From Bugula neritina (Eukaryota; Animalia; Bryozoa), in assembly GCA_964035545.1 (NCBI GenBank), contig OZ037768.1, positions 5,364,741-5,428,740 of the forward strand: DNA of 64,000 nucleotides, given 5' to 3'. The position numbers and the translations under genes were made by a program. Below the pieces are notes generated by a model. That model made no database searches. It saw nothing but the letters and a program-made list of their open reading frames with translations, and had not been told where the DNA came from. Within the stretch, counting starts at the first letter, position 1. Every line of letters begins with the position of its first letter. Of the stretch, positions 13,801 through 64,000 are shown one piece after another.

Positions 13801-14476
13801 GTATTTTCCTCAGCACACATTGTTATACTCAGTAAATCAGAAACTTTCTGTTGATACAAAATGTGTAGGTGGCTGGAGACATCAAGTTTAACTACACATA
13901 CACAGTCCGAGTAATTATATTATAATTAATTGATCTCTGTTAGTAAAGCTTAACTCATTGAAGTAAAAAGCCTTGATTTATTTCATTAAAGTGCAGTCTA
14001 ACAGGTATTGATTGCTGCCTTCAGAGGTCATGTTTACCTGCTTTAAGGTGCTCTTCTTTAAGCGCTGACACCACCTTTTCATATTCTTCGCTCTCATCAC
14101 TACATTTGAGTATCGGTGTTAGCTTCCGCTTCGGTATGGTGAACGGCACTTCTTTACTACTACTAATTCAAAAGTTAATAGATGTTATTATTACATATGA
14201 TCATGAAGTTTTCTATTGCAAGAATATAGTTCATCTTTCAATGGCAACTGATTACTGGATCTATATTTTGTGTGAATAACTTATCTGAAACCTTTTAGGA
14301 ACCTCTTACCTTCCTTTGCAGCTCAGCGTAGTTTTCTGTCCATTGACATTCTCTGTACTAAGCTTAATTGGTAGAGTTTCCCGTTGCTCTATAAAAAGTT
14401 TTTCCTCTTCTGGCTCTTGCTTATTGTGGCAGCAGCAGCAGCAGTTGTACAGCTTAGTCTGCACATGCTGCAACAT
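10802..14476 (-). CDS. SYT15: Synaptotagmin-15-like tandem C2-domain protein, about 408 aa, 8 coding exons (an additional 5' exon is possible)
   Basis: Minus-strand exons 14476-14310, 14162-14038, 13308-13113, 12733-12640, 12287-12090, 11904-11775, 11670-11476, 10923-10802 (1227 nt, all GT-AG, phases consistent). Translation includes VPFTIP, YPQNHLGRLWYTIHYDKTEEQLNVTIIKAKNLP, VTLLPGEKRYRQTSRKEEQADPIFEEIFKF (C2A), FNEIFKF and GRTVVGGVMLAAGRELEHWRLMIDKPGEDHIQWHDLC* (C2B end with WHxL). The LGRLW and GRELEHW motifs are ones I recognise from the SYT15 subfamily; orthology was not tested. Confidence 0.88.
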
Positions 14477-17438: not shown

Positions 17439-20400
17439 ATGTTAAAACTGATTCTGCCCCTGCTGTTGCTAGCGGGTAAGTTACCAACATTTTAACAAAA
17501 TTTTCAGAAATTTAAAAATAAGAATTGTCAAAAGTGTAAAATTCATTTGTCATTTAAGAGTTATATCATAGCCTAAATTTCATATTATTTTTATTATGAA
17601 TATTCTTTTATTATTATTGTACCATATCATAGCATACAATCTTAGGTTGAATGTCAAACCTGGTAACTTTTTATATCAAATGATGTTTACTAAATTACTT
17701 CAGAAGAAACTATAATTAGAACAATTTATAATTTATAATAATGTATTAATAAATTGAATTTTTAATTGATAGCTGTTGTACAATATTAGGGTTCCTAATT
17801 AATAAAGCTCCAATTAATGTTATTAATTAATATTGTGATTGGTAGAATGCTATATAAAGCAAACACCAACACCAGGTTTTCATACGTTTTATGGATGACA
17901 TGTAAAATTTTTTAGAGTAACATGTCGGTTATTTAGTATTACTAGATTTTTATTGAAAATATTTAATGAAAAAGTTTCATACACAATTTATCACATTATG
18001 TTTCTTTATCAAAAATTAATATATTATTTTTACAAAACTTAGTTGAAAAATGTTTTCAAATAATGTTTTATATTATCGATTCAGTTGAACAGATTTAAGA
18101 AGAACTAATTCAATGTTTTCACAGGGAGCAATAATTGCCAAGTAATTAAAAGTCAGTGTGATTTTGAGACGGATTTCTGTTCGTGGCAAAACATCAAAGG
18201 AACGGATCAATTTGATTGGACGAGACAGAATGCTGCCACTCCTACTGGACAGACTGGGCCGGTAGCTGACCACACTAAGGGTGACAGTAGTAAGTTTCAA
18301 CAGTTTGCTAGTATATCGGACTAAATAAATACAGTAATGTGCACGACTAGAATGTGTATTCACAACGTATAATTAGGCATATATGTTGGTAGTCCACATC
18401 GCATAATAATAGTAATAAGTCTTTACACAAACCATAATATGCCTGTAAGTATCTATAGTGTTAAGCATGCTTCAACACATTTCTTTACAGTCAACCTAGT
18501 AATATATATTCCTTACAGTATTCACTAAAATATTTCTCTAAATTTTGTCATGCATTGATGATTTGCTCAATTTCTTATTAAAGTTCATTTTTTAAGAATC
18601 GTGTAAATGTGTTATGAAACACAACTCTTTATCGAGCAAGATGTGTTGTTATCTTATGAGTGGCGTTGATAAAACCAAGGTTAGCGGCACAGCATCTTTC
18701 TTGGTTGATAAGACAGATAGTTAGTGTGGTACGGCTTGAGTCTGATTGTTTGTTCAACTGATAAAGAAGCGAAATCGCTATCATGTTTATAAGTATGAAG
18801 GTGAAACGCCCCCCAAACACAGACTCCAACCCACCAACATCACCAAACCTTTTCATGGCGATTGGCATAAGTAGTATCTCGAGTAATTAACCGATAAGTT
18901 TTTGAGTTTGTTTAAAAAAATCCGTTATTCTTATAGATGTGGCAGTGTAGTTTTAAACTCATCATTCAGTTTTGTTTGTTGTTTGCATGGCAATGAAGAT
19001 TTACAAGGCATGCAGTAGTTAAAAAAATTATATAACTATAAAAATATAAATAACTATGGGCTAATGTTTTGTATAATGATGACAGCATTGTTAGCCAAGT
19101 GATAAAATCAAAATTAAATAGGCAATAACATGTTGCTGACTGCCAAATACAATTTAATTGCAAAATAATTTATAAAGAAAATCTTAAGACAGAAGTTATT
19201 TTAACAAAGGTGGTCACTTGAATACTTAATCTAATGTTGTTATGGGCTGTCCACTCATTTTTTAAAACTGCATTGTACACTGTTAACTGCAAAATACATT
19301 AAAACTACGTTGTACAATGCAAACTGTAGCATACATTGTAAGCTGTGAATTGCAATGTACATTTTATATATCTTTTCATTTTTTACTAGTATAACAAAAA
19401 GAGTGGCAATTTTGTTTAACTCTATAGTTTTAGTCAAAGTAGAGCATAATGTTGTTAAAGTTAGAGTTATAATACTAATTTCAAATACTGACTTGCATGT
19501 GTTAAAAAGTAATATATTTTGATTAGGTGGGAGTTATGTGTTCTTTGAGACTACAGTGGGCAAAGCGGGAGACAAAGCTCAGCTAGGCAGTCTTCCCCTT
19601 TCCATCACCAGCTATAAGAGCTGCTTCAGTTTCTACTATGCTATGTATGGCGCTGATGTTGGCAAAGTACGTACTCTTCTGTGAACATTTTCACTTTTAA
19701 TAAAGGCCCTAGCCTAATCAATATCTCTGTTAATATATAATATTAGCCATTGAGCTCTCTCATCAGACATTTTGTTGGAGATATCATGTTTTGGTCCTGC
19801 TTTTATTCGATTGAAGTAAATATAATCATAGTAAACATATACCAATTGATTTCCAGAGTTTTTAATTTTAAATTTTAAATTCCACAAAATTATTTGTTTA
19901 GATTTTGAACATTTAAAACATGAGAAAGGTTTTGATTTTATTCAACATAATCAATCACCTTATATTCTCAAAAATAACTTAAGTTTTTATTTTTTAAAGT
20001 ATGTTTATGGGTTTTTTAATGCATTTTCTCAACCAAGAATCAATATATTTAATTGTTTGTTTTGGGCTTAAAGTAGTGTAATTCATTATGATTGTGACTA
20101 TCTGCAGTAGTTGTACATGAAATCAAACTAAGAAATTATCCATTCTTTGACTATTTAGCTAGTTTTGTGCACATTTAATGTATTATATGTTACTACTGCT
20201 ATTTTAGTTTAACGTCTATCTTAAAGACACTGTCACCAATAAGTTGACCAATATCTTTACTCGATCTGGAAACCAAGGTCAGAAATGGTTAGCTGCCAAT
20301 GTCAACCTCAACTCCTACAAGAATTCTCAACAGGTGATGCTGACGCTGGTTTATGTATATGTTTTACAGCATGTTCATTTGTATAGTGCCTTATTATAGT

Positions 20401-22159
20401 GTATGCTGTAGATACAACACTATTGCAGTTCACATTCTATTGTCTAGTAAATAAAAAGAATATTTAGTTTAACTTTGCTTCTTACAACCAATTGTGTCTG
20501 GTACAGATGGGTAAAATATGTATATTTAAAATATAGACGATATAGAATTCTATGCTATTATTATTGCATTCGCCCATCTCAATTAAGCATATATCTATAT
20601 GCAACTGCATGGGAAAATAGTAGTTTTGCTGCTTTTAAGCTAGCTTTTAAAGCTTTTTATTTAGTTTTGTTCTATTTTGTAATTTAGTAATAAAACAAGT
20701 TTTGCAAAGCTTATTTCGGTTGCTTATAATGAGATATTGTCAGCTAGCAATCTGTTGTATAATGTACTACGCGCAACTTACACATTTTTAAATTTACAGA
20801 TAATATTGGAGGGTGTTAGAGGTAGTGGTACAAAAGGAGATATTGCTGTTGATGACATAAAACTCTACACAGGAGCTTGTAAACCAGACAGTGGAGGTTG
20901 TATTAAAATATGTTATTATTATGCTGCATTATTGTAAATACTGTATAAACGAATATATTATATTTATATATTTCTTAAAGACTCCTTGAGACACTTCACT
21001 TATGGAGTATTAAAACATTCTTATATATATTAGTTTTCATCTACATACTGTTTGAAGGTTGTACGCCTAAACAATAATGTAAATACTGTATAAACAAATA
21101 TATTATATTCATATATTTCTTAAAGACTCCTTGAGACACTTCACTTATGGAGTATTAAAACATTCTTATATATATTAGTTTTCATCTACATACTGTTTGA
21201 AGGTTGTACGCCTAAACAATAATGTTTTATAATGAATTTTGTGCAAGTATGTGGCTGAACTGATTTGGGATATCTGATGGATTGCAGATGATTCTCTTTC
21301 TCTCTCTCAAATGACTCTCTTTCTCTCTCAGATGACGTTTCCGGTAGGCTTTGACTTCGCAGCTACTATAAAACTTATACTAATTATAACTAACTTTTAT
21401 TGCATGTTAATTGCAGTTGTTGCAACGCACAGCCTAATCACTGATGTGGCTCGGAATTTCAAAGTTTAAACTTTCAAGCCACATCAGTGATTAGGCTGTG
21501 CGTTACAACAACTGCAAATAACATGCAATAAAAGTTAGTTATAATTAGTGTAAGTTTTATAGTAGCTGCAAAGGCAAAGCCGACCAGAAATGTCATCTGA
21601 GAGAGAGATAGAGAGTCATCTGCAATCGATCAGAAATCCTAAAACAGTTCAGCATATACTTGCACAAAGTTCATAAAACATTATTGTTTAGGCGTACAAC
21701 CTTCAAACATTATGTAGATGAAAACTAATATATATATAAGAATGTTTTAATACTCCATAGGTGAAGTGTCTCATTCTGTGACGGTGTGTGTGTGCTCGCT
21801 GTGCATCATAAAAGGAAGGCTTTATAAATTGCCATGTTCACATTTGAGTAAAATCTACTGATTTTGTAAAAGCTCTATTAATTTGATTTTGTAAAGTTTT
21901 TACAAGACATTTTACTAATGAATAAAACTTTTTGCATAGTTGTAACAGCTACAGCTCCTCCTGGACAAACTACACCCGCCCCTGTGTTTACTCAGTGTGA
22001 CTTCGAAAGTGGAACTATTTGTGGGTGGAGCCAAGCTAAAGACGATCAATTTGATTGGACAGTTCATCAGAAGGGTACTGGGACAACTCAAACTGGACCA
22101 TCGTATGACCACACGACTGGGTCTTCTAATGGTATGATGCAATCTTGCTCAATACTATT

Positions 22160-22192
<33 letters not shown>

Positions 22193-22199
22193 ATATATA

Positions 22200-22297
<98 letters not shown>

Positions 22298-25200
22298 GAT
22301 ACCACATATTTATATGTAGCCTGATGTTTGTTACCACGATAATATTTCCTAAAAGCAGTATTTTTCCTTAAAACTATGGTATTTTCACACCTTACTCTTA
22401 TCACCTCACCAGTTTATTTATAACCCATTCATTTCAGCTTAGCACTCTGTATTGTGTTGTATGTAATAGGTCAAACTCTGTGTGCTTTCATTATCTTGCA
22501 AAATGTGTATTTGTAGTATTTTGTAAGCAAAAATGTCTTTAGCAAGCTAACATAGAATAAACAACTTGCCTGCACTCTGTCAGACATTATCTTTTAGTAT
22601 TGACAGAAACGGATAGTTTTTTGTATTGCATGAACTTATATGTATAAGTAGCCATGTTTTAGTTCTACATATTTTTTAATCATTATTTCATTTCTGTGAT
22701 AGGAAAGTACGTGTATATTGAGTCGTCTGCCCCGAGAACACAAGGAGATGTGGCCAGGTTGGTGACGGGAATGTTTCCCGCAGGCAGAAGATGCTTACAG
22801 TTCTACTACCACATGAAGGGAAGAGATATCGGCTCTCTTGTAGTCTATACGCAAGAGACGGGGTGGGCCAAGTACCCCCGATTGACTAAGAAGGGTGAAG
22901 TGGGTGATGACTGGAACTTAGCTATGATATCTATAAATACCAAGCAACCATATCAGGTAATTTGTATCATCTAAACTACAAATGTTTAGCATTTTTTAAT
23001 TATATACATTTTATTATCACTTGATGCATAATCAATCAAAGCAGGGTATAATTTTATTTATTTTTTATACTTGCTAATAGGTTCAGAGTAATATTTCAGT
23101 GTTATTTTATTCTATTCGATTCATGAATGTTGCTAAAACTTTCATATTTGTTAGAATTGTATTTTAGAGTAGCTTAATTTGCTGAGTAACAAATTTCTAT
23201 AATTTTAGAAGATTTGAATAAAGTTGTGTTTCAACCCGCTAAAACTGAGTACACCACACAAACACGAAAAGAGGAAAATAACATTGCATATTTTCATGTA
23301 AATTTTAGGATTTGTTTTTAAATTTGACATCAGCTGTAATAATATTTGTGGTTTTAGGTAATATTTGAAGGAGTGGTAGGCAAAGGGCTGTACGGTGACA
23401 TTGGCTTAGATGACATCAAACTACTGTCAGCCACTCAAGGTCAGTGTCCTTCTTCCACAGCGTGCACATTTGAGACTGGACTATGCGCCTTCAGAAATAC
23501 TCTCATAGGAGATGACTTTGACTGGACTCTAAACAAGGGAGAGACAAGGAGCTCCAACACTGGACCAACAGTTGATCATACTCTGCAGAACAAGAATGGT
23601 CTGTTCACGTGAAGCTAATATTGTATTACTTACCCTGTATTATCTATATTCTTTAAGAGAGCCTGCCAGATGTTTTAATTTGTTGATGACAGTGTTTTAA
23701 TGGTGTTCAGGAAAGGCGTTGTAGTATTTAAACTATATTGTTTTTGGGAGTTGTCGGTGCTATAGCTATAGCAATACTGTAATGAATCTATAATATGAAT
23801 ATCTAAGTTTTCACTAAATAATATAATCTATACCAATATATATTAACTGTAAACTAGTTTTGTTGCTGTAATAAACTGGTATCTGCATTGTTTTTATTGT
23901 TTTGTAATTTTTCATATTCTAGAAGATTTTAATTGATTTGGATAATTTGTATTATTCCAGGTCAATATGTATACATTGAAGCCAGTACCCCAAGAAGAAC
24001 TGGGGATAGAGCAAAGCTTGTGGGGTATAACAACAACCCCACATCTCTCACCAACTGTCTTCAGTTTTACTACCACATGAAAGGCACATCTATTGGTTAG
24101 AATATACACTTTACTTTATTTAATTCACACAGTACAGTTGAAGTTTCATATAATTTTATAACTTCTAGGGACTAGGAGATCTTCTTGTTTACGAAATTTG
24201 ATAAAGTAATATAATTGATTGACTGTTTTCAATGTTTTTATTGCGTGAAAACAGCATAATTTAAAATTTTCTACTAAAGACAGAATTTTCTAAAAATTTC
24301 AAACTATCATTATGATTAAGTTCTAGAGTCCCACTACTGATTTAAACTGTATGAGTGCTAGCTTACAGCACATGGGAGAGATTTTTCATCTGTTGTTTTT
24401 GAATCCAGGGTCACTTAAAGTAACAATTAAGACCAGCTCATCTGAACAAGATATATGGTTACAACAGGGTGATAAAGGAGATAAATGGAACAGAGGCCGG
24501 GCAGAAATTTCTCCCCAAACCAACAACTATCAGGTGTTGTTAAGATCTCAGTTAATACCAGATGAAAATTAAAATTAAGTACTGCATATTATTAACTCAT
24601 GTTGAATTTAATGATACATGTAAAGTGATACCATAGAGTAATATAAACTATAGTTCATGGGTCATTTTACTTGATTTAGTACACACTGGATATCTTCAGT
24701 TTTTAGCTATCTTTCACAATTTAACTGCTAATGGACATGGGTTTTTTGGCCAAAACTAGTAAAACACCAATAAATACACCTAAATAATCAAAGCTCTTTT
24801 TAATTTTGCTTCATTTCCCATGTTTTTTCCTAATTATTCAGCTACTTTTGGTTGCGGACCGTTACGGTTTTTTTAGTAACGGTCTGCACTCCTAATAAGC
24901 TAAATATATAAGAAAAAACATGGGAAATCAAGCAAAATTAAGAAGAACCTTAATTGTTTCAGTGTATTTATTAATGCTTTACTAGTTTTGGGCAAAAAGC
25001 CATGTTCATTACCAGCTAAATTGTGAAAAATAGCTAAAAAATGGAGATTTCAGTATGTACTAAATTAAGTAAAATGACCCTCATTCTAATAGGTGAAGAA
25101 CTAGCATTTTTGAAAACTTTTAGAATTTTTGTACATTCCTTTAAATCAGATTATTGTTCTAATCACACCTGTAAGAGAAAGTAGTATTGTCACATTTCAC

Positions 25201-28200
25201 TTCCTTAATGCAAGCATTAGGCAGTCATTATATTATGTGACTGCTTGTAGATTGTGTTTGAAGCTATTAGAGGGAATGGCATACAAGGAGACATCGGCTT
25301 GGATGACATAAGGCTAGTGAAAGGACGCTGTGCAAGTAAGAAGCCCTGCTATTATGATATATACAGTTATAAATGCCAGTTCCGTTGATAGTCCACAAAT
25401 TATCATCTATTTTTTGTTGTTTCAAAATAGTTGCACACTGAAATTGCAAGTTATATTAAAAAATATTGGTTTGAATGTTTTAGCTGTTCCTGCTGACGCT
25501 GTTGCCACGACGACTACTACCACTACAACAACGACCACTACGACTGCGCCAGCAGTTACCACGCCAAAGCTCATTGGTGAGTCTTTTACTTTTCTTTACA
25601 TAAGTAGCAAGTATACTTTCCTTAAATTTGCATCAACTTTGTGTATAAATTTAGCTGTTTTTTACAATGTTGAGAAATGTGTAAGGACTGTTAATTTTAG
25701 TTTTGAAGTACAAAATGCTTACTTAAGTTAATAAATTAGTAAAACAATTTTTTTCTGTCCTCTCAACTGTGTAACAGCCTTGTTTAACTCTTGATTCATA
25801 CCCATGACTCTTGATTTCAGGCCCTCAGACGGTGACATGTGATTTTGATGTTGACTTGTGTGCCTGGAAACAGTCTACTACTGATAACTTTGACTGGTCA
25901 CTGCAAAGTGGTCCAACTCTGACTACGCAAACCGGACCTTCTGCAGACCACAGCTCCGGGAGTGAGTAATATACATAGTAGTAGCATATGTAGTAGTAGC
26001 ATATATCAGTAATATACATAGTAGTAGCATACGTAGTAGTAGCATATATCAGTAATATACATAGTAGTAGCATATGTTGTAGTAGGACACATCGTATCAG
26101 TATACATAGTAGTAGTAGTAGTAGTAGTATCAGTATACATAGTATCAGTATACATAGTAGTATCGGTATACATAGTAGTAGTATACATATATAGTAGTAG
26201 TACGTGTATATAGTAGTAGTATATATAGTAGTAGTATATATAGTAGTAGTATACATGGTAGTAGTATATATAATAGTAGTACATATAGTAGTAGTATACA
26301 AAGTTTTACAAGTTATAATATTATGCATTGCTTGTCAATGGCTACTACATATGAATTAACAAGATCACTCATTTATATATAAATTGAATGCAAGGTAGTT
26401 GATCCAATATTTTCTAGTTTTCATCATTGTATTATATTGTAAAAGTTTTTCAACAGGTTTTTATCTTCACAAATATCTTTTTTAGTATAATTATGAAATA
26501 AGTATTTCCAGACTTGCTTAATTGTTAACAAACTGATTGTGAATTTGTTGTTAGAGGGACAGTATGCTTTCATTGAGACAACATTTACTGGAAGTGGGCG
26601 AAAGGCTGTTCTCCAATCCCCGGAGCAACCCGGGCCCACGGGCTGTCTCCAGTTCTGGTACCACATGTACGGCACCACCATTGGCTCACTGAGAGTTTTC
26701 ACTCTGACCGGCCTACGGGAATCCACCTACTGGGTCAAGAAGGGCACTCAGGGGGACAAATGGAGATTTGCTCAAGTTGACTTTAAAGTTGCTGACAAAT
26801 ACAAGGTATTGTTACGTTTATTGTTTTATTCTACAGAAACATTGAAACTCAAAAATCAAAAGTGTTTGAAAAAAACTCTGCACTGATATTTGTAGCAACA
26901 CTAAAAATTTGTATTTAAAATTCTGTATAAGGATCTTGGAATGTATAAGTTTTTTGTGAAGGAATTTGTTACATTTTAAAAGTCTAAAGGTTTTCTCTTT
27001 TATAGTAGTATTTGCATTGTTATATTTTTTTTTTGGTGTAGAAGGCAAGGGCATAGCTATGTGTGAATGGTTCCTTGTCGATACTTTTTTGAGACACTTT
27101 TGAATCTCTACTTTATGCAATTAATATATTTTGTTGTACCAGCACCATGCTGCAGTTCTAAGTGTTTTAATTATGCAACAATGTCTGTTTGCAGAAGACC
27201 TGTAAAAATTGTCTGTAAATTTTATAAAGTTTGTAAAAACTAAACTGAGTTTCCAAGTTTAAAATTTTAGAGAATGTTTTTCAGATTGGTATAGAAGCAG
27301 TGAGTGGGGGGTTCGCTAAAGGAGATATTGCTATTGATGATGTTGTCTTTAGTCAAGTTGGCTGCTCCTCTCTCATCTCTTCCAACACATCTTCAGCTAG
27401 TAAATTCTTCTGTGATTTTGAAGATATTAAACTGTGCGGGTGAGTAATGAGATAAGGTGTTGTTTGTTATTTACATGACTATCTGCTAATAAACTGTGTT
27501 TACATCAAATGCGTGTACAGCCAGGTTAACCATGTTATCAGGAAAGGTGGTCAGATGAAACTTTGAATCAATTTTTTTTCTCATTCCATGTTTATAACTG
27601 ACTTCTTTATATGCTTCAGCTATTATATTATAAATACTATATTATACAGTTATATTATTATATTATGCTATTATATTACTATATTATGCCATTATATTAC
27701 TATATTATTATATTATTATATTTTACATAATACTATATTATGCTATTATATGACTATATTATAAAACAGGTTTCAACAAGACAAGACTGATGACTTCAAC
27801 TGGTCGCGAAAATCTTTAGCTACAAGTTCTTCCGGTACGGGTCCATCCTTTGACCACACCTATGGCTCTGATAAAGGTAAGTTCTTAAGCTACACTATGT
27901 TTGAGACGAAGCTTTTAGTGTTTAGGAGTTGTTTGCCTTTCTGATAAATGTAGCATTATAACGTCACATCGTTCTACAGGCGAATACATGTATATCGAGG
28001 CATCTGGGAAAAAGGCTGGGCAAAAGAGTAGACTTGTCTCCCCTTCGTTGACCATGTCAGGGGATACATGTATTCTCTTCTTCTATCATATGTATGGAAA
28101 ATCTACTGGAAAACTTAATGTTTATGCACAGGTAAATATTACTTGTCTGTATACAGTACACTGTCTGTACATTTATACTCTGCATATTTATACTCTCTGT

Positions 28201-52200: not shown

Positions 52201-55200
52201 GTTTCTAGCATTTGAATAAATTTTTCTCAAGCCGAGAACTTTGGCCTTTGTAGCTTGTGTTTAAGCTTACATGCATATGTTTCTTTACTCAGCTTATCCA
52301 CCTGAGGCTATACCTCTGTCGTACTCTACTACCCCTACGACAACAGCTCCCTCTACCACGTCTGCTAACCCGGCCCTTTCCGTTATCTTCTGTAACTTTG
52401 ACCAAAGTCTCTGTTCATTCACCCAGTCAAGGACAGACGATTTCAACTGGTCATGGAATACTGCTGGTACAAGTTCATCTGGCACAGGTATGTAATTATA
52501 TAGCCTCAGTGCCTCCAATAACATAAGTCTCTCCAGTAGCATTAGTCCTCCATATTATGTAGCCTCAGCATCTTTAATAGCATTAGTCCTTCATATTATG
52601 TAGCCTCAGTCCCTCCAGTAGCATTAGTCCTCCATATTATGTAGCCTCAGTATCTCTAGTAGCATTAGTCCTCCATATTATGTAGCCTCAGTATCTCTAG
52701 TAGCATTAGTCCTTCATATTATGTAGCCTCAGTCCCTCCAGTAGCTCTAGTAACTCTGTTCTTCCAGGAGTACAGTTGCATATTGTCTTAATACTACACT
52801 TACATTACATGCTAGTTGTATATTATATTCTATGTGTGTATATAACTATGAGCTAGAAGGCTGGTAATCTCTAAACTCTATTATATGCTGCAAGTAACAT
52901 GTCTATGTAGGCCCATCTACGGATCATACTACTGGCAAAGGAAAGTATATCTTTATTGAGAGCAGTGATCCCAGGAAACCGAATGACATGGCTGTTATTA
53001 CTTCTCCGTCTGTGACAGGGGGAGATTATTGCCTCAAATTCTGGTACCTATTTCTTGTTATTTTATATTTGTCTCTGTATGTCATATGTTGTTGGCATAA
53101 AATCTAAGTAATTCTAGTCTGCAATAAGATAGTTAATATTTAATGTACGCAGCTTACGTCATAATGAAAGAGTGTTTAGATTTTTTTCTAAGATAATAAT
53201 ATATAAAGTATTTCAGTTATGGTTTTGTGCCTCAAAGTGCTTATTTGTTATCTACCCATCTGTCTACTCTTTAACTTCAATTTTTTCATTTGCTGTTTAT
53301 CTACCTGTTTGCTAATCGTAAATTGTCTTCTCCTGTGTCGGTAAATCTGGTTGTGTTGTTATTTAGGTACCACATGTACGGCCCACATGTCAACACACTT
53401 CGAGTTGCCACCAGACCATCATCTGCTGGATCTCTCTCTTCAATTATCTTTGAGAAATCAGGTTCATGACTCATAATTTTAGCTGTGGCATTGTGATTAC
53501 TTATAGTCGTGAAGTTCTAGCAGTAGCCGGACATCTTGTCAACACTTATATATGATTCAACAAATTAACATAAATATTCGTGGTTTGGTTGTATGTATAA
53601 CTTTATAAAGAGTTAATAATGTATTGATTAAACATTCAGGTACGCTGGCTAACCAATGGTATGAAGCTTCTGTGAATGTAAAAGAGTCGTCACAGTTTAA
53701 GTTGGAGTTTACTGGTGTGAGAGGTGTGAGCTATATGGGAGACATAGCCCTCGATGACATCTCTATGTCTAGTGGACTTTGCTCAGCATCACTGTGTAAG
53801 TGATTCACTCATCTGCTGGTGTTTTGAGCTGAAATTTGTTAATTCAGTTGTTATTTAATATTTTTGTGTACATCAGCATTATACAAACAATTAGAAATTG
53901 AAACAACAAATATTGATAACCTCAAGATAAGCCATCTGCTGAGAATATTTCTATTGTGTCTGTACACAGTATTAAAGTTTTATATTTTTCAGCACATTTT
54001 TGTAGCTATTTTTCAGCTAAGGATTTTGGTATTTTTCTTTAAACTTTTTTTACATTTTATTTAGCTCCGACTACTTTGTGTACATTTGAGTCGCCAGTGT
54101 TGTGCAACTACAAGCAAGACGCTACGGATGATTTTGATTGGTCACAGCGTAGTGGAAGTACTAGCTCATCTGGGACAGGGCCGACTGACGATCACACTTA
54201 CGGTAGTCCTGTAGGTAAGACATCCTCCTACAACTATCCTCCTGTGCTGAAATGGTGAAATAAACTTTTTGAAAATCAACTTGCACGTGCTCAGTAGGTA
54301 TTTTCTAAGAGAACAGTAACATGGTGAGAGAGAAATTAATTAATATTTTTATCATAAAATTTTTGCATACTTCAACATGAACCAATTGACATTTTTTAGA
54401 AAAATTTTGAATAAGTTATAACGTGCTAAATGAACTTAATAAATCGAAATTGTAGGCGCATACATATATATTGAGGCGAGTGGAAAATCTGAAGGAAATG
54501 TTGCTAGACTGATTTCTCCATCTATGAGTCGCACCAGTGGATCTTGTGTGGAGTTCTGGTATCATATGTATGGAAAGGGTACTGGAAACCTTACAGTAAG
54601 TAGGGGTATGAGTAGGGTACTGGAAACTTTACAGTGAGTAGGGGTATGAGTAGGGTACTGGAAACCTTACAGTAAGTAGGGGTATGAGTAGGGTACTGGA
54701 AACCTTACAGTGAGTAGATGAATATCATGCATAAAACTACTGATTCCCCTGTAAACTGTTGCTGTATGTTGCTATTGGTCCCGTCTGTTTCTCTCTAGAT
54801 ATATACAAAGGAAGGGGATAAACTTAGTTTTCCAAGATGGCAAATTTCTGGCGATACCCAAAAGAATTTCTGGCAGCTTGCAAAAGCTAATATACCAAGA
54901 ACTGCTAGTACTTGGGAAGTTGTGATTGAAGGTACAGCCTATTTTAACAATTTAAATTAAGTAAATTTTTCCCATCAAATTGCAATCTTTTAAAGTGTAT
55001 AATTTCATGTTTTGGCTTATTTAAAAGCATTTTCATAATTTGAATTATTTTATAAGCTTTTGTAAAAAAAACATTTGTATATTTATTTTTTATTGAAATT
55101 TTTTCATACAATCGTAGGTTTGAAAAATATAATAGCTGCTCAACATGTTCTAAATAGAGAAAATAACTTTTTATTTTAGGTACTGCTGGTTCATCATATA

Positions 55201-58200
55201 CTGGAGACATTGCGGTTGATGATGTCATAGTTAAAGATGGAGGTTGTGGAAATCCAACTGACTGTAACTTTGAGCAGGGACTTTGTCTGTGGAGAAATGA
55301 AAACTCCAACGATGATTTTGATTGGCTATTGGGAAAAAGCTCTACTCAGTCTAGATACACTGGGCCTACTTCAGATCATACGATTGGAACGGATAGTGGT
55401 TAGCCTAAATTATATAGGAAATATAAAGTTTTCTACCTTTCTGTTATGGAGTTTTATATAGATTTTGTGCATCAGAAGCTAAACCTAAAGTATGCTTACA
55501 TAGTGTATTTTTGGCTTGGAATCAATTATTTAAACATATAGTTTTTTATCGAACATTTTTTAAATTAAAATAATATTTTAGACTATGAAATTAACTTGTT
55601 GGTAGAGTTTATTTTGCGTCATCATGCCTTCCTACTTGCAATTTATTTCTTGCAAAAGTACATCACTACTACAGCATATATACTGTAGCTGCCTCTAACG
55701 ATAATTTGTAGGAAGCTACTTGTTTATGGAAGCCTCAGCTCCAAGACGTCCTGGTGACGTCACTCAGCTAATTAACTCAGCGGTTAATTTGCCATCTGGC
55801 GGGTGCTTTGTTTTTTGGTACCACATGTTTGGAGCTAACATAGGCACTCTCTCAGTCTATGACAACACCAAGGTCAATGCACCGCAGCTACTCTGGGCTC
55901 AGTCCGGGGATAAACAGGACAACTGGCTGAATGGCAGAGTGAGTAGATTTCATCGCCTTGACTTGTGTAGTCCTAAATACACAAAAACTTCTCTTAATTT
56001 TGTTATTTGAGCAAAAACGTAAAAATATCTAAGATATAGTTTTTAGCTTGTTAACATTTTCTTATCATAAAACACATTTGTATAAATAAAAATAAATTTC
56101 ACTTCAAGAATTTTGAAGTTTTAAAGAAATAAAATACTTCATGCGTTTTTTAGGTTCCATTAAATAAAAATGTTAAATCTGTAATGATACAAGCTACTCG
56201 AGGCCTGAACCATCTTGGGGACATTGCTATAGACGACATTCTTGTTGTTACATCACCCTGCACTTGTAAGTTATGGAATATCTCCTACAATAATTTATTT
56301 TTGTTAGCTATAATAATTTTAAATTAAAATCAAACATCAATGCTATGGGCAATTTTTCATTATTCTCATATTTATACGTATTTCCATGAGAAATGAGAAC
56401 ATTTTGTGTTATAATAAAATAAGATCTTAGAATGTTTAATCCAAGGATTCATGTGTCTAATGCCACCACGTTAATGTATTTTTATCATTTGTGAGAAAGA
56501 AAGTAAAATGTGCCCAGTAACAATTTATTATGATATTAACAGTTGGTTTTGATGTTGTGTTTTAGTGTTCCCAAGCAGTATCGATGTACTCACTACTGCT
56601 CCTACAACCCCTGCTACCACTAAAAAGCCGTTTGGTTAGTAGCTGTTATTTTGGAAGATTCTAGAATTTTATTACTACTGCCTCAAAATTATTGTACAGT
56701 AGTATGCAAATGATCTGTGCGATAATTTTTTGGATTTGTTTTCCCATACTTGTTACACATGAAATGACTAATCAACATGTTGCCATGTATCAGTTCATGT
56801 ACTTATTCACCTTAGTGTCCTAATAGAACTGTATGTTTCAAGTTTGTCTATAAACTATTCATTCAGTTTCCCAATCCACCTGGGATTGTGCATTTGAAAA
56901 GGACATCTGTGGCTGGAAACAAGACAAACAGACAGACAATTTTGATTGGAGCAGAGCCCAAGGGCCTACTGCCAGCTCTCGAACTGGTCCAATCACAGAC
57001 CACACACTAAGTACAGGTTAGCTTATATAATATTCTATATATACAATATTTTGTATTATATTCTGTATAATATATAATATAATATCCGATATAATATATT
57101 GTATATTACTATATTAATAGTTTTTATTTAATATATTCTCTAACTCTATATGATGTATTATGTAATATTCTATAAATATTTTATATTATAATATATCCTA
57201 TGATTATATATGTTCCATTATTTGTTATTTCTTTTTATTATATAGTTTTTCATATAATATATTATATAACTCCATTTAGAATTTTATGTTATTGTATTCT
57301 ATAATGCATGCTATAAGATACAATCCTGTTACATTAATTTAGCTGTGGGTTAACCTTTTTCTAGTTTAATTGGTGCAACTTTTACATAAGTTTAAAAATT
57401 CACCAGAATCATGTTATCAATTTTTCTTATGGCACTATTTGATAATCATATTTTCATCCTCCCAGCCAATGGATGGTACATTTATATGGAATCCTCAAAC
57501 CCCAACACTAATGGAGACAACACGAAGCTGGTGTCACCAACCATTTCTGGAAATAACATCCCAAGATGCTTGAGTTTCTGGTATCACATGTACGGGCCAG
57601 ACGTGGGAGCCTTGAGTCTTTATATCTTGGTAAATACTTCGTCAAATATTATTTAAAATTTTTTTAGTAAATTCTTTTCAATAAATGATAAAATTTTCTT
57701 GTAAATCACAGCTTACTTTTTAAGTGCTTTCACTGTCACAATGTTGTTTGTAGGACAAGGGAGTTGTTAAAGATACAGCTTTTCAGATGAATGGCACTCA
57801 AGGGAACAGCTGGAAGCAAGCCAACATCTCTCTACCCAGCAGCTATAATGATATCTCAGTTGTGTTTGAAGGAATAGTGGACGCTGGTTATATGGGTGAC
57901 ATCGCACTAGATGATATATCTCTAACAGCTGGTGCATGCTTTGAAGACTCAAGTAAGACTGCATAATGCTTAATATGCAACATAATATATATGCTACAAA
58001 AATACAATTATAAAATATATAGCATCGTAATATAATATATAATAATCTCATGTAATAATATATAATATAATAATCTGATATTATATATTATAATACAATA
58101 AATTATTGTAATAAATAACATAATAATATGATATAATATGATAATATATAATGTGATTATCTAATATATAAAATAACACATGTTATTGACTTTACTGGTG

Positions 58201-61200
58201 AAGCTTATATAGAGATGTACACTTGTGTTTCTTATATTTAGGGTTTATATACCAAAAGGCCATTTCTAACTTCTATCTAGTTTATCTATGCAGAGCTGTT
58301 TTATAATCTAATTCACATTTATCTTTGAAATATGAAATGTTTGGTGAATAATGCATGTTTTAATTATTCAGCCATTGGAGTTTGTGACTTCGAGATTGGT
58401 ATGTGTGGGTACACACAAGATAGCAAGGATGTGTTTGATTGGACCCTTCGATCAGGGTCAACCAGTAGCCAGTTTACTGGTCCTTCAGCTGATCACACAG
58501 TAGGCACTTCTAGAGGTAAGAAAACTCCCTAATATCATTTAAATATAATATGGTGTTTCTAAGAATGTTCCCAGCATTACATTTATACATGTGCTTTTAT
58601 GTGTAGGTAAATACTTGTACATTGAAGCAAGTAGCCCTCGAAAAGCTGGTGATACGGCATTACTGGTCAGTCCCGTCATGCAACCATCTCAATCTAGTAA
58701 ATGCTTTACCTTCTGGTACCACATGTATGGTAGCCATATTGGTAAGTTGACGGTGAGCATTCGACGTCCAGGCCAGCCTGCCTATACACTGTGGGTTAAG
58801 ACAGATGAGGAAGGCAATAGATGGGAACAAGGAGAAGCCTCCATTCCACCTCAGACAGTATCCTATCAGGTTAGGCTGCTGCAACTGCTAAGTCTTTGAC
58901 TAACCCTAAATTTAATAAGTTTTTAAAAAATGTAGTACTTTATAACAATATAGGCCATTTTTCTCATATTTTATACAGCTGGCATGGTCTAAATTTATGT
59001 TTATCACTACTTTTTCAAAAAAAATGCAGCCTCATTCCTAAAGTTCATTATTATTTCTAGCCTTTATGTAGCTTTAGATTCAACACTATTTAAATTTCAT
59101 CTGCAGTACATACTGCATTGGGTAAAACTTGACAAGAATTTGTTAATGGTTCGTGCCAATAATATTTAAAAAGATGTTTTTTTACTCAGAAGTATAGAAA
59201 CAGTGTTTCCAAGTGTGACACAATGTCGGTGTATATCTGTAGATTGTGATATCAGGAGAAACAGGATCTGGACATGCCGGAGACATTGCTATCGACGATT
59301 TGAATATTGGCGCCGGAACTTGCGCTCAACCAGGTACGTTAGAGCTCATTGTTGGCTCCTGTTCTGCCGATATTTCATTTCAAGTGTTATTATTCATCAA
59401 TGCTTGTCCTTCTCGTATTGTTTACATATTAGTAGCCTTTTATCTACTAGCTGTTGTAATGTCTTCTGCTTTATTTAGGTGACTGTGACTTTGATAAAAA
59501 CATGTGCACATGGTACAACGTTCGGGCTGGTGATGATTTTGATTGGATTAGAGGAAAAGATAAAACTGCTTCACAATTTACTGGACCCAGTTTTGACCAC
59601 ACATCTGGCAAAGGTTAGCTGAATTCATCATTTTTTGGGTGCAATTTATTTTCCATTGGCACATGCTTTAGTTATGTTGTTGGTGAGTAAGACGCTGGAG
59701 CTCACTGTCAAATAATTTTTTCATTGTTCACAGGAAGTTACATGTTTATTGAGGGATCTGGGACGCAGCAAGTTGGCGATGTGGCGCGACTTTACTCGCA
59801 AACATTCCTTCCTGTTACTGGATTACAACCCAAATGTCTTAGTTTCTGGTATCACATGTATGGCGGCGATATTGGAGTCCTAAGAGTATATGTAATGGAT
59901 GCTCAATCTAGTACGTAGTTTACTTTTACAGATACTCATAAACTCTTTATATCCATGGCACAATATAGCTGTCTTGTCAATTTTTTATAAACCAACTGTT
60001 AAATATTTTCAAAAATTACTTACAAGTTACATCATATTTGGCATCAATTTTTTTTTCAGAAAATCTGACAATGTACTGGGAACTGACTGGTGATCGAGGT
60101 GATAAATGGCTGAGTGGAATTTTGCCAACATGGAGTCTAACTCCTTATAAGGTGATGTTTATTTATTATTGTAGCATTCTTGTTGAATTGATTTGGTGAT
60201 ACTTTCTTAAGTATGTCGTCTCTTCTACATGTGTAGATTTCCTGTCGCCTGTTTTTGTTATAATTTATAGTATTCAATATTTTATTGCATTGTATTTATC
60301 ACATTGGTAGATCTTAATAACCTAATACTGCATTTTGCTATTCTGCAACATTTTCTTATTGCTACTATGAATACAATGTAGTACATTGTATTTCATAATA
60401 CATCACTCTTGATAACATTATAATATATCATTATATTATTTTACAGATTGTGTTTGAAGCTGTCAAGGGTAAGAACTACAAGAGTGACATAGCCATCGAT
60501 GACATCACCTTCAGTGACATCAACTGTGATATCAAACCATTTGATGCCAGAACTTTAAATGCACCAAACTCGCCTCTCGCATCCGTCTCACCGACATCTT
60601 CTTCCCCCACTACACCACCAGGTACACGTCTTAACATGGTAGAATGTTGACTGTGTGTTGCAGGCAGTAAAGACATGCATTATATATTATAACAGTTAGT
60701 TAAAAGACTAGATGAAGCCTTGCAAATTGTTAAGTCATTATAGCTGTATTGAATATTTGTAGCTTGAGAGTTTATATAAAAGTAAAGCAATCTAACTTCA
60801 AATATGAAATGAGAACCTAAGCTAAGCAAGAATTCTCATATCACCACCAATTCATTGTTAAATAGTTTTACTTTCTCATTGCATGCAATCATCATTGTTT
60901 TATATCATTTAGGGCAACATGCATGCCATATGTATAGTTATTTGTTCAATGTAATGTTATTGTTTTTATATATCATAAGAATACAGAATTAGTTAAAACA
61001 ATCTGGAGACAAATTATTTTCATTATAACTATAAGATTGTACATCAGCTATAGCTGTGTTTCTATTCAATACAGACAATATGTTATATAAGTATTATCAT
61101 ATACACTGATGCATTCTATTTATAAATGATATGTTCATACGTGTTTGCAGCTCCTACAGTGGCGGATTGTAACTTTGAAAATGGTTTCTGTTCATGGAAA

Positions 61201-63965
61201 CAAGCAACAGATGATCTGTTTGACTGGAGTCTGGGTAAAGGAGACACACAGACTCTGCAGACGGGACCAGTCAGTGATCACACTCTTCAAAACGGTGAGT
61301 TGCCTTCTCTTACAGGGTACATCTATAAGTACAGTATATGAGACACTACATCCCGCCACCCGTGCAGGACCACGGCGGTGAAAGGTAACCACCATATGAG
61401 TCACTACATCTTCACAGTATGCTGAGTACAAGCAAATCTTTAGCTGATATTATTTTATTTTATTATTTATGCCAGAGATTTGAACTCATGATGAAAGTGT
61501 AAAACACACGTTACGCTTTATTGTATAAGCAAGGGTATATGCTGTGCCTAATGTATGTACTAGCTGTGTGTACTAACAGTGCAAAGTACTATCTACTAGT
61601 GTACATGTATACCAACTGTGTATGTGCCTGTATAGCTGTGTATACTAACTATCTATACAAACAACATGTATACCAACCAAGTATTTTTTTTCAGGAAATG
61701 GCCAATACGCATACATTGAAGCATCTACACCCCGTAGAGCTAACGATACTGCTAGGTTGGAATCTGTTATGTTGGGTAGTACACCTGGTACCTGCGTTTC
61801 CTTCTACTATCATATGTACGGTACGGATATACATACCCTTACACTCTACTCAAGAGCTCAAGGAACCAAGGTTAGGAAATTATTATATTATAAACAACTT
61901 TCAATTCATTTCATCTTATTGTTTTCCAAATTCCATTATAGGAAAATATCATCGATTCAGTTTGTTGTTTACATGTCATTTCCTGTGGTCAGAAAGTTAC
62001 GTGAAATTCAAACCTATACATTAGAATTAGTTTAAAAAATCATATCAGCTTGATATAGGTCACATGTTGATAAATTTCATTCTCAACTCTATATGCAATA
62101 TAGACTCTCTCATTGGAATGGACATTATCCGGTACTCAAGGAAATGCGTGGATTAATGCTAAAGTGAATATTGTCAGCACACGCCCGTACCAGGTGAGTC
62201 GCTACACAGAAGCACGCTCAATGATTCACGTAAAATTCTAAATGAAGCTGATTGTTTTTACTTTAATAATGACTAAAAGTATGTTTATGGGCCCGAAATA
62301 CATGCTGGTTTTATACATTTCAGCTTGTGTTTGAGGCATTACGGGGTACAAACTACAGAGGTGACATATCCATTGATGATATCCAGGTTTCTTACAGCCC
62401 ATGCAAAGCATCTGCTGGTAAGAGTTGTAGTCCGCCATCACTTTAAAATTACTTGTTCATTAGTTGCAAAAGTTTTGAGCTTTACACACTACACAAGCCC
62501 ATATGTGCTGGGCAGTGGTGTATTGTAGACATATCTGTAGGTGAATTTATTATTTTACATTTTATTCTTTCTGTAGCTGTATTCTTTTGCTTTTTAAAAA
62601 CAGTTCTCAACCCAGTAACCTTTGCAGAAAGACTTTTTTATGAGAATTGCTTATTAAGTCCTTTTCTTTATATAAACCATTGTTTATATTCTATATTACA
62701 AGTAAGTGACTGTTGAATATTTACGTTATACTAACACTTGTCTTACTTTCTTTATGACACTTGCATGAGAGACAGATATTTTAAAAAAATATACCAGAAA
62801 AGTCACCAATATCATCCAAATAATCAAACCCAGCTTTGAGTTCCTCTATGCCAGGCAGTAACAGTGGAATTCCCGATTTTAGGAGCAACACATAGTTCTG
62901 TAGTAATGTTTTGCTTTTTGTTCAAGAGAGTTCCGTATTCTATTTACAGCACTGAGCTGTGACTTTGAGGATGCCGCTATCTGTGGATACACTCAGAATA
63001 ACGGTGATGATGATTTTGATTGGACGAGGAATAACAGAACTACATCATCAGGTTCTACTGGTCCCTTTGCTGATCACACGTATGGCTCTTTCAATGGTAG
63101 GTTTGTGTGGTGACTTGATACTAACCACATATTTGAGTACTCATACATATGCACATATCTTGTTAGTAGCGTTTACATCACCTATTAGATTGAGCTCAAG
63201 AATTCTGTTTAAGTCATAATTGTGTATGAGTGCATTGGTAGCTAGATGATACCTCAGGTTTTCTAAAGACTATACATTCTATTATATGCAACGAATGTTA
63301 AACACAGTCGTATAACATTGAGTAGAAACGTGTTGTACACAGTTTGCTATCACAAAAGTTAGTTCTTATCTTTCCATGCAGTTAAATGAACTTCCAACTT
63401 TAATGCTATTTTTATTTCAACTGCTGGAGATATATTTGCCTTATTAGGTCACTACATGTACATCGAGTCAAGCTCACCTCGAGTGCAAGGGGATAGAGCT
63501 TACCTGCTAACACCTGCTCTTACAGCCGCTAAAGCCAAATGTATAACCTTCTGGTATCACATGTATGGGTCAACCATTCAGTCATTAAATGTGTATATTA
63601 AGGTGAGAGTACCAGCTTCAGCATCAGATTGTACAGGAAATTTCCTCATTGTTTACATCCAGTTTTATATGTGAATTTGTAGTAATAATATTTTGGTTGG
63701 TGCGGTATATTTCAAGCTAAAGTTAACTCAGATTCTATAATGTGATGCACCATCACTTTGTTTCAGTCTGGACAGGGCAATCAGACTATCTGGACAAAGT
63801 CGTATAACCAAGGAAATCAGTGGCTGAAAGCACAAGTCTCACTACAATCCGCTCCTCAGTCTTCACCATTCAACATCCTGTTTGAAGGTATAGCGGGACC
63901 GGGGTACACTGGAGATATCGCTATTGATGATGTCAGCATTGACGCTCAGTCATGCACGTCTCCCG
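17439..63965 (+). CDS. Giant multi-MAM-domain secretory-pathway protein (MAM and LDL-receptor class A domain-containing protein / MALRD1-like family); 29 MAM domains in the window; 3'-partial
   Basis: Exon 1 at 17439-17475 ([13 protein letters not shown], signal peptide) splices to 18125-18289 ([20 protein letters not shown]...DHT), then 19527-19666, 20208-20333 and so on. About 97 exons were traced by hand with compatible phases up to 63767-63965, which ends at a GT donor, so the gene continues past the window. Repeats carry the MAM hallmarks Cx[30 protein letters not shown] and GDIAIDD. Approximate domain starts: 18157, 21996, 23463, 25838, 27412, 28915, 30288, 31948, 33218, 34660, 36115, 37268, 38940, 39944, 41337, 43353, 45298, 46566, 47971, 49178, 50536, 52391, 54079, 55263, 56887, 58383, 59484, 61168, 62958. 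Confidence 0.93.
18629..18783. promoter_or_regulatory. Candidate intronic enhancer (GATA-motif cluster) in intron 2 of the MAM gene
   Basis: Six WGATAR sites at 18649, 18667, 18706, 18715, 18759 and 18778, within a locally GC/CpG-richer island. Confidence 0.4.
20933..21224. repeat. 145-bp direct tandem duplication overlapping the left end of a fold-back element
   Basis: The string tgtaaatactgtataaac...cctaaacaataa occurs at 20933 and 21078 with few mismatches. Confidence 0.9.
21132..21773. mobile_element. Fold-back / MITE-like element of about 640 bp with inverted arms of about 320 bp
   Basis: The left arm tgagacacttcacttatggagtattaaaacattc... is the reverse complement of the right arm ...gaatgttttaatactccataggtgaagtgtctca. 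Complementarity continues to a centre at about 21452-21476. No clear TSD. Confidence 0.85.
22160..22295. repeat. (TA)n microsatellite
   Basis: About 135 bp of nearly pure TA. Confidence 0.98.
24659..25080. mobile_element. Palindromic MITE of about 420 bp with GGG...CCC termini and a 4-bp TCAT target-site duplication
   Basis: Boundaries read TCAT|gggtcattttacttgatttagtaca ... tgtactaaattaagtaaaatgaccc|TCAT. The arms pair, with divergence, up to a central gaccgttac/gtaacggtc hairpin near 24857-24883. Confidence 0.85.
25965..26300. repeat. Compound (TAG)n / TATACATAGTAGTAG simple repeat
   Basis: Directly visible; source of the Thr/Tyr-rich minus-strand ORFs. Confidence 0.92.
27620..27762. repeat. 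Degenerate (TAT/TATAT) low-complexity repeat
   Basis: Visible tattatatta units running almost to the splice acceptor. Confidence 0.8.
30490..30750. repeat. Degenerate (ACACTT/ACATTT)n hexamer repeat
   Basis: Visible acttac/acatat units; source of the His/Leu/Thr-rich ORFs. Confidence 0.85.
36742..36958 (+). mobile_element. tRNA-derived SINE of about 217 bp with a 16-bp target-site duplication
   Basis: A-box-like TGGTCTAGGGG and B-box-like GGTTTGAACCC in the head. Flanked by TTCTGTAAGCATTATA at 36726-36741 and 36959-36974. Related copies lie at about 37627-37825 and, inverted, at 40691-40756. Confidence 0.85.
37627..37825 (+). mobile_element. Diverged second copy of the same SINE family
   Basis: Shares ggtgatgttagg.agagca.cca, ccacata.gaataagtc.tta and acagggat.g.ga with the 36742 element. 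Confidence 0.75.
40691..40756 (-). mobile_element. 5'-truncated inverted fragment of the SINE 3' end
   Basis: The reverse complement contains cagggatggtgactataaa, matching cagggatggcgactataaa in the 36742 element. Confidence 0.65.
44067..44138 (+). mobile_element. tRNA-like fragment (SINE head or tRNA pseudogene)
   Basis: A-box-like TGATGTAATGGTT and B-box AGTTCGAATC at tRNA spacing, but the T-stem and acceptor stem are mismatched, so it is not called a functional tRNA. Confidence 0.6.
49810..49942 (+). other. Non-canonical GC-AG intron in the MAM gene (MAM20)
   Basis: The donor CAG|GCAAGT joined to the ttcag acceptor gives in-frame ...PSYQ|[19 protein letters not shown]. This matches the YQ|(I/V)xFE phase-0 intron seen in other repeats; no in-frame GT donor exists before the TGA at 49828. 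Confidence 0.85.
50764..51262. repeat. (ATTGT/ATTGC/ACTGT)n pentanucleotide repeat, about 500 bp
   Basis: Directly visible; runs up to the acceptor at 51264; source of the Cys/Ile/Tyr-rich ORFs in three frames. Confidence 0.95.
52497..52745. repeat. Minisatellite of about 41 bp (ATTATGTAGCCTCAGT...AGTAGCATTAGTCCTCCAT)
   Basis: About 6 tandem copies beginning just after the donor at 52488. Confidence 0.9.
54577..54716 (+). repeat. 38-bp tandem repeat copying a MAM23 exon/intron donor junction
   Basis: Unit GGGTACTGGAAACCTTACAGTAAGTAGGGGTATGAGTA, about 3.7 copies; GTRAGT donors at 54596 (used), 54634, 54672 and 54710. Confidence 0.92.
57025..57305. repeat. AT-rich low-complexity tract
   Basis: Nearly all A/T with tatat/atatt units; a similar tract lies at about 57985-58170. 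Confidence 0.75.
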
Positions 63966-64000
63966 GTGAGTGTCTGTAATATTATTGGCTTTCTATGCCA

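Follow-up and report, generated by a model that had tools for sequence, protein, structure and literature searches.

Proteins that join MAM domains to other extracellular modules have been described from several animals. The skeletal matrix of Acropora yielded MLRP1 and MLRP2, as fragments of 5,145 and 7,311 amino acids (aa) with Pro/Thr repeats (PMC4043741), and the skin mucus proteomes of octopus feature MAM-and-LDL-receptor proteins prominently (PMC11431876). Mouse Diet1/MALRD1 carries nine MAM domains interspersed with nine LDL-receptor class A (LDLa) modules (PMC8804323), and in zonadhesin-type proteins MAM occurs together with mucin and VWD domains (PMC1325057). Here, a stretch of 64,000 nucleotides from the bryozoan Bugula neritina (contig OZ037768.1; G000:C4:5364741-5428740 in the 216 Mb assembly; hereafter the window), which is AT-rich eukaryotic DNA with a GC content of about 34%, was analysed. 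An original prediction had proposed that it encodes a giant, LDLa-free polymer of MAM domains arranged in threes. The window was found to hold the first 29 of about 69 MAM domains, or the 5' 40% of the gene. With a probability of roughly 0.7, the locus is read as one very large gene for a predicted type I membrane glycoprotein, built from MAM triplets and containing about 69 MAM domains and 20-21 LDLa modules.

The likeness to MLRP1 and MLRP2 of Acropora millepora (B3EWZ5 and B3EWZ6), from which the family takes its name, is one of described architecture: these are likewise giant MAM and LDLa proteins with short Pro/Thr repeats (PMC4043741), but they are known only as fragments from the skeleton. 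Vertebrate MALRD1 (Diet1) also unites MAM and LDLa in one protein; it differs in that its nine MAM and nine LDLa domains alternate strictly in a protein of 236 kDa, with neither a MAM-only triplet array nor Thr/Pro hinges of the kind described below, and its role in enterocyte FGF15/19 control is not transferable to the present gene. Zonadhesin and zonadhesin-like proteins resemble the locus in that a mucin-like segment comes after two or three MAM domains (PMC1325057), but there VWD domains follow, whereas none of the 26 VWD matches in the genome lay within C4:5.36-5.51 Mb. Gel-forming and transmembrane mucins have long Pro/Thr/Ser tandem repeats, in domains of hundreds of residues, whereas the hinges of the present gene measure 29-44 aa and are not tandem repeats of one another. 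The endocytic receptors of the LDL-receptor family share LDLa modules, EGF domains, a single transmembrane (TM) span and NPxY in the tail; they differ in their YWTD beta-propeller, for which no match (Ldl_recept_b, PF00058) was found in the locus, and in that MAM domains dominate here.

Extent of the gene and its distal part

Within the window, Pfam MAM (PF00629) matched plus-strand exons bearing the signature C-x-F-E ... FDW ... TGP..DHT. A MAM profile of 160 positions, built from the window's own pieces, found 98 exon pieces, all on the plus strand, which were chained into 29 domains from 18157 to 63949, and an independent whole-genome Pfam scan recovered the same MAM exons; the original count of 29 consecutive domains was thus confirmed. 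The read-out was extended 80 kb downstream (ext denotes window numbering continued downstream, and L002-L009 the downstream pieces). With the same profile and chaining, the array was followed unbroken past the window to ext 129,884, giving about 69 MAM domains (D1-D69) over 112 kb, and no MAM domain was found on the minus strand of the array with this profile in the window and the 80 kb downstream. As originally supposed, the gene is therefore unfinished at the window end. It continues for another 67.5 kb, which hold D30-D69, all of the LDLa modules, an EGF domain, a putative TM span and NPxY motifs, up to a stop codon at G000:C4:5496299-5496301 (L008:7559-7561).

Splicing was modelled by listing all frame-compatible GT/AG pairs for each fragment gap and scoring the resulting peptide with the profile. 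A single clear solution with consensus splice sites emerged for nearly all intra-domain junctions, the GT-AG introns restoring profile continuity, and every junction could be bridged in frame with GT-AG sites. In total, 155 introns were modelled (median 295 bp), and all 69 domain models are open reading frames. The predicted size, which comes from this splice model alone by summing domains, connectors and end, is a span of about 114 kb with more than 200 exons and roughly 13,000 aa. A 146-aa open frame with a hydrophobic stretch was seen on the minus strand at L005:8913-9350, within an intron of D54 that, at 1.6 kb, is unusually long; a listing of open reading frames gave no other long unexplained frame in the introns of the locus. 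Other multi-MAM arrays were observed in the same genome, at G000:C4:1.733-1.758 Mb (with a very regular spacing of about 1.8 kb), C4:19.840-19.854 Mb, C1:35.345-35.368 Mb and C7:15.163-15.169 Mb.

LDLa-like sequence was first met while short N-terminal MAM pieces were being extended. The 20-21 modules, located by regular expression, by Pfam PF00057 on 10 exons and by a profile of their own, lie on the plus strand among the MAM domains at ext 79.7-131.1 kb, the first being about 15.7 kb beyond the window end. In the window itself, a profile made from the gene's own LDLa modules reached a best E value of 0.6 over six frames, in agreement with the earlier observation that no such module is present there. 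The wider claim of a protein without LDLa modules, however, was contradicted by their presence in the same plus-strand array. The LDLa-free appearance reflects the position of the window end, short of the LDLa part of the array, and with this window-edge artefact corrected, the apparent LDLa-free class becomes the N-terminal part of a known family. Judged by its modules, the predicted protein is of the MALRD1/MLRP type and not a separate LDLa-free class, and we infer that its MAM-only and MAM-LDLa parts would lie in the same transcript.

In the membrane-proximal third of the predicted protein, where MAM domains and LDLa modules are mixed, a higher-order unit of nine MAM domains is present in three copies (roughly D33/34-41, D42-50 and D51-59) at L003:3854 to L006:8063 (ext 77.8-112 kb). 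Its LDLa modules and hinges keep a constant arrangement. Lag-9 identity in this distal part was 35.7% against about 32%, and odd domains recur at equivalent places of the unit (D40/49/58, D41/50/59 and the degenerate D42/51). The triplet syntax described below reaches into the LDLa part, where D37-39 and D46-48 classify as 1-2-3. The register of the triplets is shifted by one at D34 (L002:6652-7122, plus strand), the sole MAM domain without an intron, which shares its exon with the end of D33. The last exon (L008:6995-7558) encodes an LDLa module, an EGF domain (Pfam) and a hydrophobic span; KRRQ comes next, and the tail contains two NPxY motifs and ends at a TAA stop. A membrane anchor, which the original prediction had suggested seeking downstream, is thus represented by a putative TM span, called by a crude hydrophobicity rule. 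Together with the two NPxY motifs, this span suggests a receptor-like tail, which may bind adaptors as LDL-receptor relatives do.

The three-domain MAM module

The pattern of triplet and hinge holds to D36, the first 36-39 domains forming triplets of three distinguishable types. In the GT-AG splice models, the connectors after D3, D6 and so on to D27 measure 29-44 aa and consist of 42-58% Thr+Pro+Ser, whereas the remaining ones are shorter (median 9 aa; Mann-Whitney p 5e-6 against third-position connectors, D1-D33); those within triplets are 5-25 aa long and bear Cys. The hinges after D3 and D24 are separate small exons. Each of the linker positions originally read from the window (25484, 30199, 34541, about 38645, 42930, 47520, 52293, 56566 and 60530) corresponds to a splice site or a segment of the model, and the two extra linkers reported after D1 and D13 were also present.

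The domains themselves differ by position. Among D1-D39, 11 of the 13 third-position domains carry aromatic-x-N together with one to three additional residues in the loop that precedes FDW, which bears out the (W/F)-x-N signature and longer loop originally assigned to every third domain. Aromatic-x-Q is found in most first- and second-position domains, and second-position domains often have one extra residue between the first two cysteines. With position-specific profiles from which a domain's own cassette was left out, 29 of 33 domains were classified correctly (p 1e-10). Identity was 39.0% for same-position pairs against 37.4% for other pairs, a result reached in none of 2000 permutations, and the permutation test gave no identity signal for periods of 2, 4 or 5. 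The period-three sequence signal is small but robust, and linker lengths, classification, lag-3 identity and the positional signatures together establish the proposed cassette of three MAM domains and a Thr/Pro/Ser hinge as real.

The expectation that a domain tree would fall into three clades by position was borne out only in part. The quick maximum-likelihood tree was poorly resolved and contained no starred branch, and the clades did not emerge as such; nevertheless, position labels cluster on this tree, with 7 changes where 15.9 would be expected (0 of 200 shuffles), and 10 of its 11 third-position domains group together. In approximately unbiased tests, monophyly was unrejected for each class (log-likelihood +2.0, -0.7 and -4.5), but the power of these tests was low because a control block was likewise unrejected (-23.5, p 0.18). 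Three position clades are compatible with the data, without being demonstrated by the tree.

Intron positions were tested as independent evidence of cassette duplication and showed no periodicity: most domains share introns at positions 45-46 (phase 1) and 131 (phase 0), and variation in the middle intron follows no period. The maximum identity between any two domains of the gene was 51%. Given this ceiling and the non-periodic intron positions, the cassettes must be ancient, and a recent local duplication of the cassette, as a form of the growth originally proposed for the gene, was not supported on the same two grounds.

The structure of a triplet was predicted with AlphaFold2 on a homologue from Ptychodera, chosen among 45 aligned in-register triplets. 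In register, its 503 residues gave a mean predicted local distance difference test (pLDDT) of 90.6 and a predicted template modelling score (pTM) of 0.78. When the register was shifted (second domain, third domain, hinge, first domain), the values were 89.1 and 0.67, respectively, with the hinge below pLDDT 50. The comparison of registers put forward with the original prediction thus favoured the proposed one, on the homologue, by a modest difference, and the models fit a compact triplet with a flexible hinge. Matches in the PDB were to single MAM domains only (8yt7 and 5l73, template modelling score 0.75-0.77 by target). Since no tandem-MAM structure has been solved, none being found in the PDB, the triplet grammar may be useful for structural work.

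Relatives and the reading of the locus

A search of 1.84 billion representative proteins with the single-exon domain D59 (L006:7304-7705) as query returned 6,671 proteins, at the top of which stood giants with 10-40 MAM matches. These relatives, of up to 7,512 aa, come from hemichordates, molluscs, an annelid, amphioxus, echinoderms and chelicerates (Saccoglossus, Ptychodera, Octopus, Antedon, Aplysia, Patella, Owenia, Patiria, Gigantopelta, Pecten, Branchiostoma, Haliotis, Pycnogonum and Ornithodoros). They include Saccoglossus XP_077865040 (5,469 aa) and XP_002734431 (6,049 aa), Octopus vulgaris CAI9725294 (6,043 aa), Owenia CAH1786792, and Aplysia XP_035827615 and XP_035827620. The closest sequence relatives are members of the MALRD1/MLRP-type family; domain identity to any relative is at most 55%, and the lineage is therefore a distant one.

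The domains of the best 150 of the 6,671 proteins were classed with profiles trained on window positions only. The class order 1>2>3>1 was dominant in these proteins, and gaps of at least 20 aa followed class 3 in 46% of cases, against 6-9% for classes 1 and 2 (p 5e-16). Strings such as =123=123= were seen in Ptychodera, Owenia and protein P0021, and the unit L-M-L-M=L-MMMM=MMM in Aplysia and in unnamed models. In a consensus drawn from 45 homologue triplets, the originally noted signatures recur: the third domain has W-x-N, and the second has C-D-F-E-x4-C-G and DHTxGT. A TM-like stretch and then NPxY were present at the C-terminus of 21 of 158 proteins (the 150 and cluster members). Besides being the best sequence matches, the relatives thus share with the Bugula gene the 1-2-3-hinge triplets, the nine-MAM unit with LDLa and, wherever a model is complete, the EGF/TM/NPxY end. 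They differ in size, with at most about 40 MAM domains in the best 150 representatives against about 69 here, the locus being about twice as long as any of these 150.

The architecture could therefore not be upheld as an undescribed one peculiar to this DNA, since the same 1-2-3-linker syntax occurs in predicted orthologues from several phyla. A limited literature search found no paper describing the MAM triplet module, and no experimental study of these relatives was found in the literature. The module of period three is real and conserved and seems not to have been described before, and on the evidence of the predicted proteins the triplet cassette is a family trait older than the phyla compared. 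In a test for one-to-one orthology of individual domains, the best cross-species matches lay only 2-5 points above the best within-gene matches, with the same few consensus-like domains recurring. Foreign domains and paralogues within the gene are about equally close to a given domain, a comparison biased by pool size. Taken with the low identity within the gene, this closeness argues against a recent local expansion. Across phyla, the family gains an internal grammar, in which MAM domains form a module of three and a higher unit of nine; this grammar is useful for gene annotation because many database models are fragmentary or split in two.

If the locus is a single gene for a membrane-anchored giant, each triplet would be a compact structural unit and, the triplets being compact, the ectodomain would form a segmented filament of some hundreds of nm on the cell surface, for which the beads-on-a-string of MAM triplets in the original prediction is a fair picture. 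The hinges would be O-glycosylated and extended. The membrane-near LDLa modules may bind ligands in a calcium-dependent manner, and, by analogy with LDL-receptor relatives, the NPxY motifs may link the protein to clathrin adaptors. In that case it would act as a giant receptor of the apical-surface or endocytic scavenger type, its ectodomain possibly also being shed into mucus or matrix. The triplet cassette would have arisen before the divergence of the compared phyla, with no recent local amplification. The gene is a very large, possibly record-sized member of a known, barely studied family, and its product is exceptionally large if the single-gene model is true. A broader proposal is that the MAM triplet is an ancient compact super-module, present from spiralians to deuterostomes in giant NPxY receptors, of which this gene (about 69 MAM domains and 13,000 residues) would be the largest member so far and among the largest animal membrane proteins; the odds of this are put at about even.

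Several points weigh against the single-gene membrane protein. RNA runs contained only 5-9% of the words sampled from a 6 kb stretch. The inter-domain junction from D34 to D35 depends on a weak donor (position weight matrix (PWM) score 2.5), several distal junctions require one or two additional exons, and RefSeq has the Aplysia counterpart as two models on one contig. The signal-peptide-like leader, the TM segment and O-glycosylation are judgements made from the sequence, and the triplet structure was predicted on a hemichordate homologue and its compactness judged by pTM.

A possible, though doubtful, alternative is that the protein is mainly a shed or secreted matrix component (mucus, adhesive or skeletal organic matrix), with the anchor serving for delivery only. 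Family members do occur in octopus skin mucus proteomics (PMC11431876) and in the Acropora skeleton (PMC4043741), and the very long ectodomain with O-glycan-type hinges would suit such a role. However, the TM span and two NPxY motifs are conserved in many homologues, which argues for a function at the membrane and in endocytosis; moreover, no cleavage site or SEA-type module was identified, and the hinges are far shorter than true mucin domains. The original suggestion of a mucus, adhesive or biomineral-matrix component therefore survives only by way of shedding, the gene being predicted to encode a membrane-anchored protein. One hypothesis is that giant membrane receptors are the source of the MAM-LDLa proteins found in the skeletons of corals and the mucus of cephalopods.

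It is unlikely that the locus consists of two or more adjacent genes, namely one in the window for a secreted polymer of MAM triplets without LDLa and, downstream, another for a MALRD1-like receptor. Such a division would agree with the absence of RNA evidence of continuity, with the weak D34 donor and the odd, intronless D34 itself, and with the annotation of the Aplysia counterpart, in which one protein has triplets only and the other MAM-LDLa. Against it, strand and exon spacing are uniform throughout, in-frame GT-AG bridging succeeds at all junctions, and a screen of 17.4-131.6 kb found no other leader-like exon, terminal stop context or TM stretch. Furthermore, the 1-2-3 syntax continues into the LDLa part, and models from Octopus, Owenia and Saccoglossus unite a MAM-only triplet array and a MAM-LDLa array in one protein. 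A decaying or non-functional repeat, or an assembly artefact, is hardly credible: although the MAM profile gives low scores to D11, D20, D42, D51 and D62-64, each of the 69 domain models has an open frame and intact splice sites, copies that are 30-51% identical are beyond creation by assembly collapse or expansion, and D42 and D51 stand at equivalent places of the nine-MAM unit and so look like conserved variants.

Features of the window and neighbouring genes

Coordinates of the leader exon, the MAM domains and the linkers within the window are collected in Table 1.

Table 1. Predicted features of the MAM gene within the window (position 1 is the first nucleotide of the window).
Feature	Position	Strand	Evidence
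Exon 1, start codon and short hydrophobic signal-peptide-like leader	17439..17475	+	Donor at 17476, PWM score 10.9, in frame with acceptor 18125
MAM D1, position 1, 4 exons	18157..20874	+	Pfam, own profile, splice model
Thr/Pro-rich linker after D1, 17 aa	21949..21995	+	Splice model
MAM D2, position 2	21996..23447	+	Pfam, own profile
MAM D3, position 3, FRN signature	23463..25331	+	Pfam, own profile, signature table
Linker exon after D3, poly-Thr, whole connector 38 aa	25484..25576	+	Splice model
MAM D4	25838..27356	+	Own profile
MAM D5, first 10 residues at end of D4 exon	27411..28629	+	N-terminal extension, splice model
MAM D6, position 3	28915..29979	+	Own profile, signature table
Thr/Pro/Ser linker after D6, 33 aa, shares exon with start of D7	30199..30287	+	Splice model
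MAM D7	30288..31917	+	N-terminal extension, splice model
MAM D8	31948..32708	+	Pfam, own profile
MAM D9, position 3	33218..34279	+	Own profile, signature table
Thr/Pro/Ser linker after D9, 44 aa	34541..34659	+	Splice model
MAM D10	34660..35639	+	Own profile
MAM D11, degenerate, FDW and DHT motifs lost, open frame, good splice sites	36115..37250	+	Summed score 54 bits vs about 160 for others
MAM D12, position 3	37272..38633	+	Own profile, signature table
Thr/Pro/Ser linker after D12, 42 aa with 38923-38939	38634..38742	+	Splice model
MAM D13	38940..39869	+	Pfam, own profile
Short Thr/Pro linker after D13, 25 aa, same exon	39870..39944	+	Splice model
MAM D14	39945..41107	+	Pfam, own profile
MAM D15, position 3	41337..42928	+	Own profile, signature table
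Thr/Pro/Ser linker after D15, 29 aa with 43337-43353	42929..42998	+	Splice model
MAM D16	43354..44864	+	Own profile
MAM D17	45298..46226	+	Own profile
MAM D18, position 3	46566..47505	+	Own profile, signature table
Linker after D18, 38 aa, 42% Thr+Pro+Ser	47506..47605	+	Splice model
MAM D19	47971..48853	+	Own profile
MAM D20, diverged	49178..50011	+	Own profile, tree
MAM D21, position 3	50536..51869	+	Own profile, signature table
Thr/Pro/Ser linker after D21, 35 aa	52293..52390	+	Splice model
MAM D22	52391..53776	+	Own profile
MAM D23	54079..55247	+	Own profile
MAM D24, position 3	55263..56252	+	Own profile, signature table
Linker exon after D24, whole connector 34 aa	56566..56634	+	Splice model
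MAM D25	56887..57936	+	Own profile
MAM D26	58383..59320	+	Own profile
MAM D27, position 3	59484..60518	+	Own profile, signature table
Thr/Pro/Ser linker after D27, 40 aa with 61151-61167	60519..60621	+	Splice model
MAM D28	61168..62392	+	Own profile
MAM D29, gene continues beyond window, donor at 63966	62958..63949	+	Own profile, splice model

Other genes lie upstream of the MAM gene. At window 1267-7623 (plus strand), a J-domain-like motif (HPDKN) and several thioredoxin CxxC exons were seen in a DNAJC10/ERdj5-like layout, and exon 6425-6730, the sole exon checked, matched Pfam Thioredoxin. At 5900-6350, a tandem repeat of units of about 22 bp makes the reading frames repetitive in every frame of both strands; it is probably intronic in this thioredoxin gene. 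Between the thioredoxin and MAM genes, reading frames at 11378-14488 (minus strand) resemble, by eye, a C2-domain (synaptotagmin-like) gene. Downstream of the MAM gene, laminin-EGF-like, hormone-receptor-like and multi-pass membrane exons, recognised by eye at L009:3500-9200 (minus strand), suggest by this combination a CELSR-type adhesion G-protein-coupled receptor. Long (TA)n microsatellites were observed at window 22140-22300 and at L009:2900-3200.

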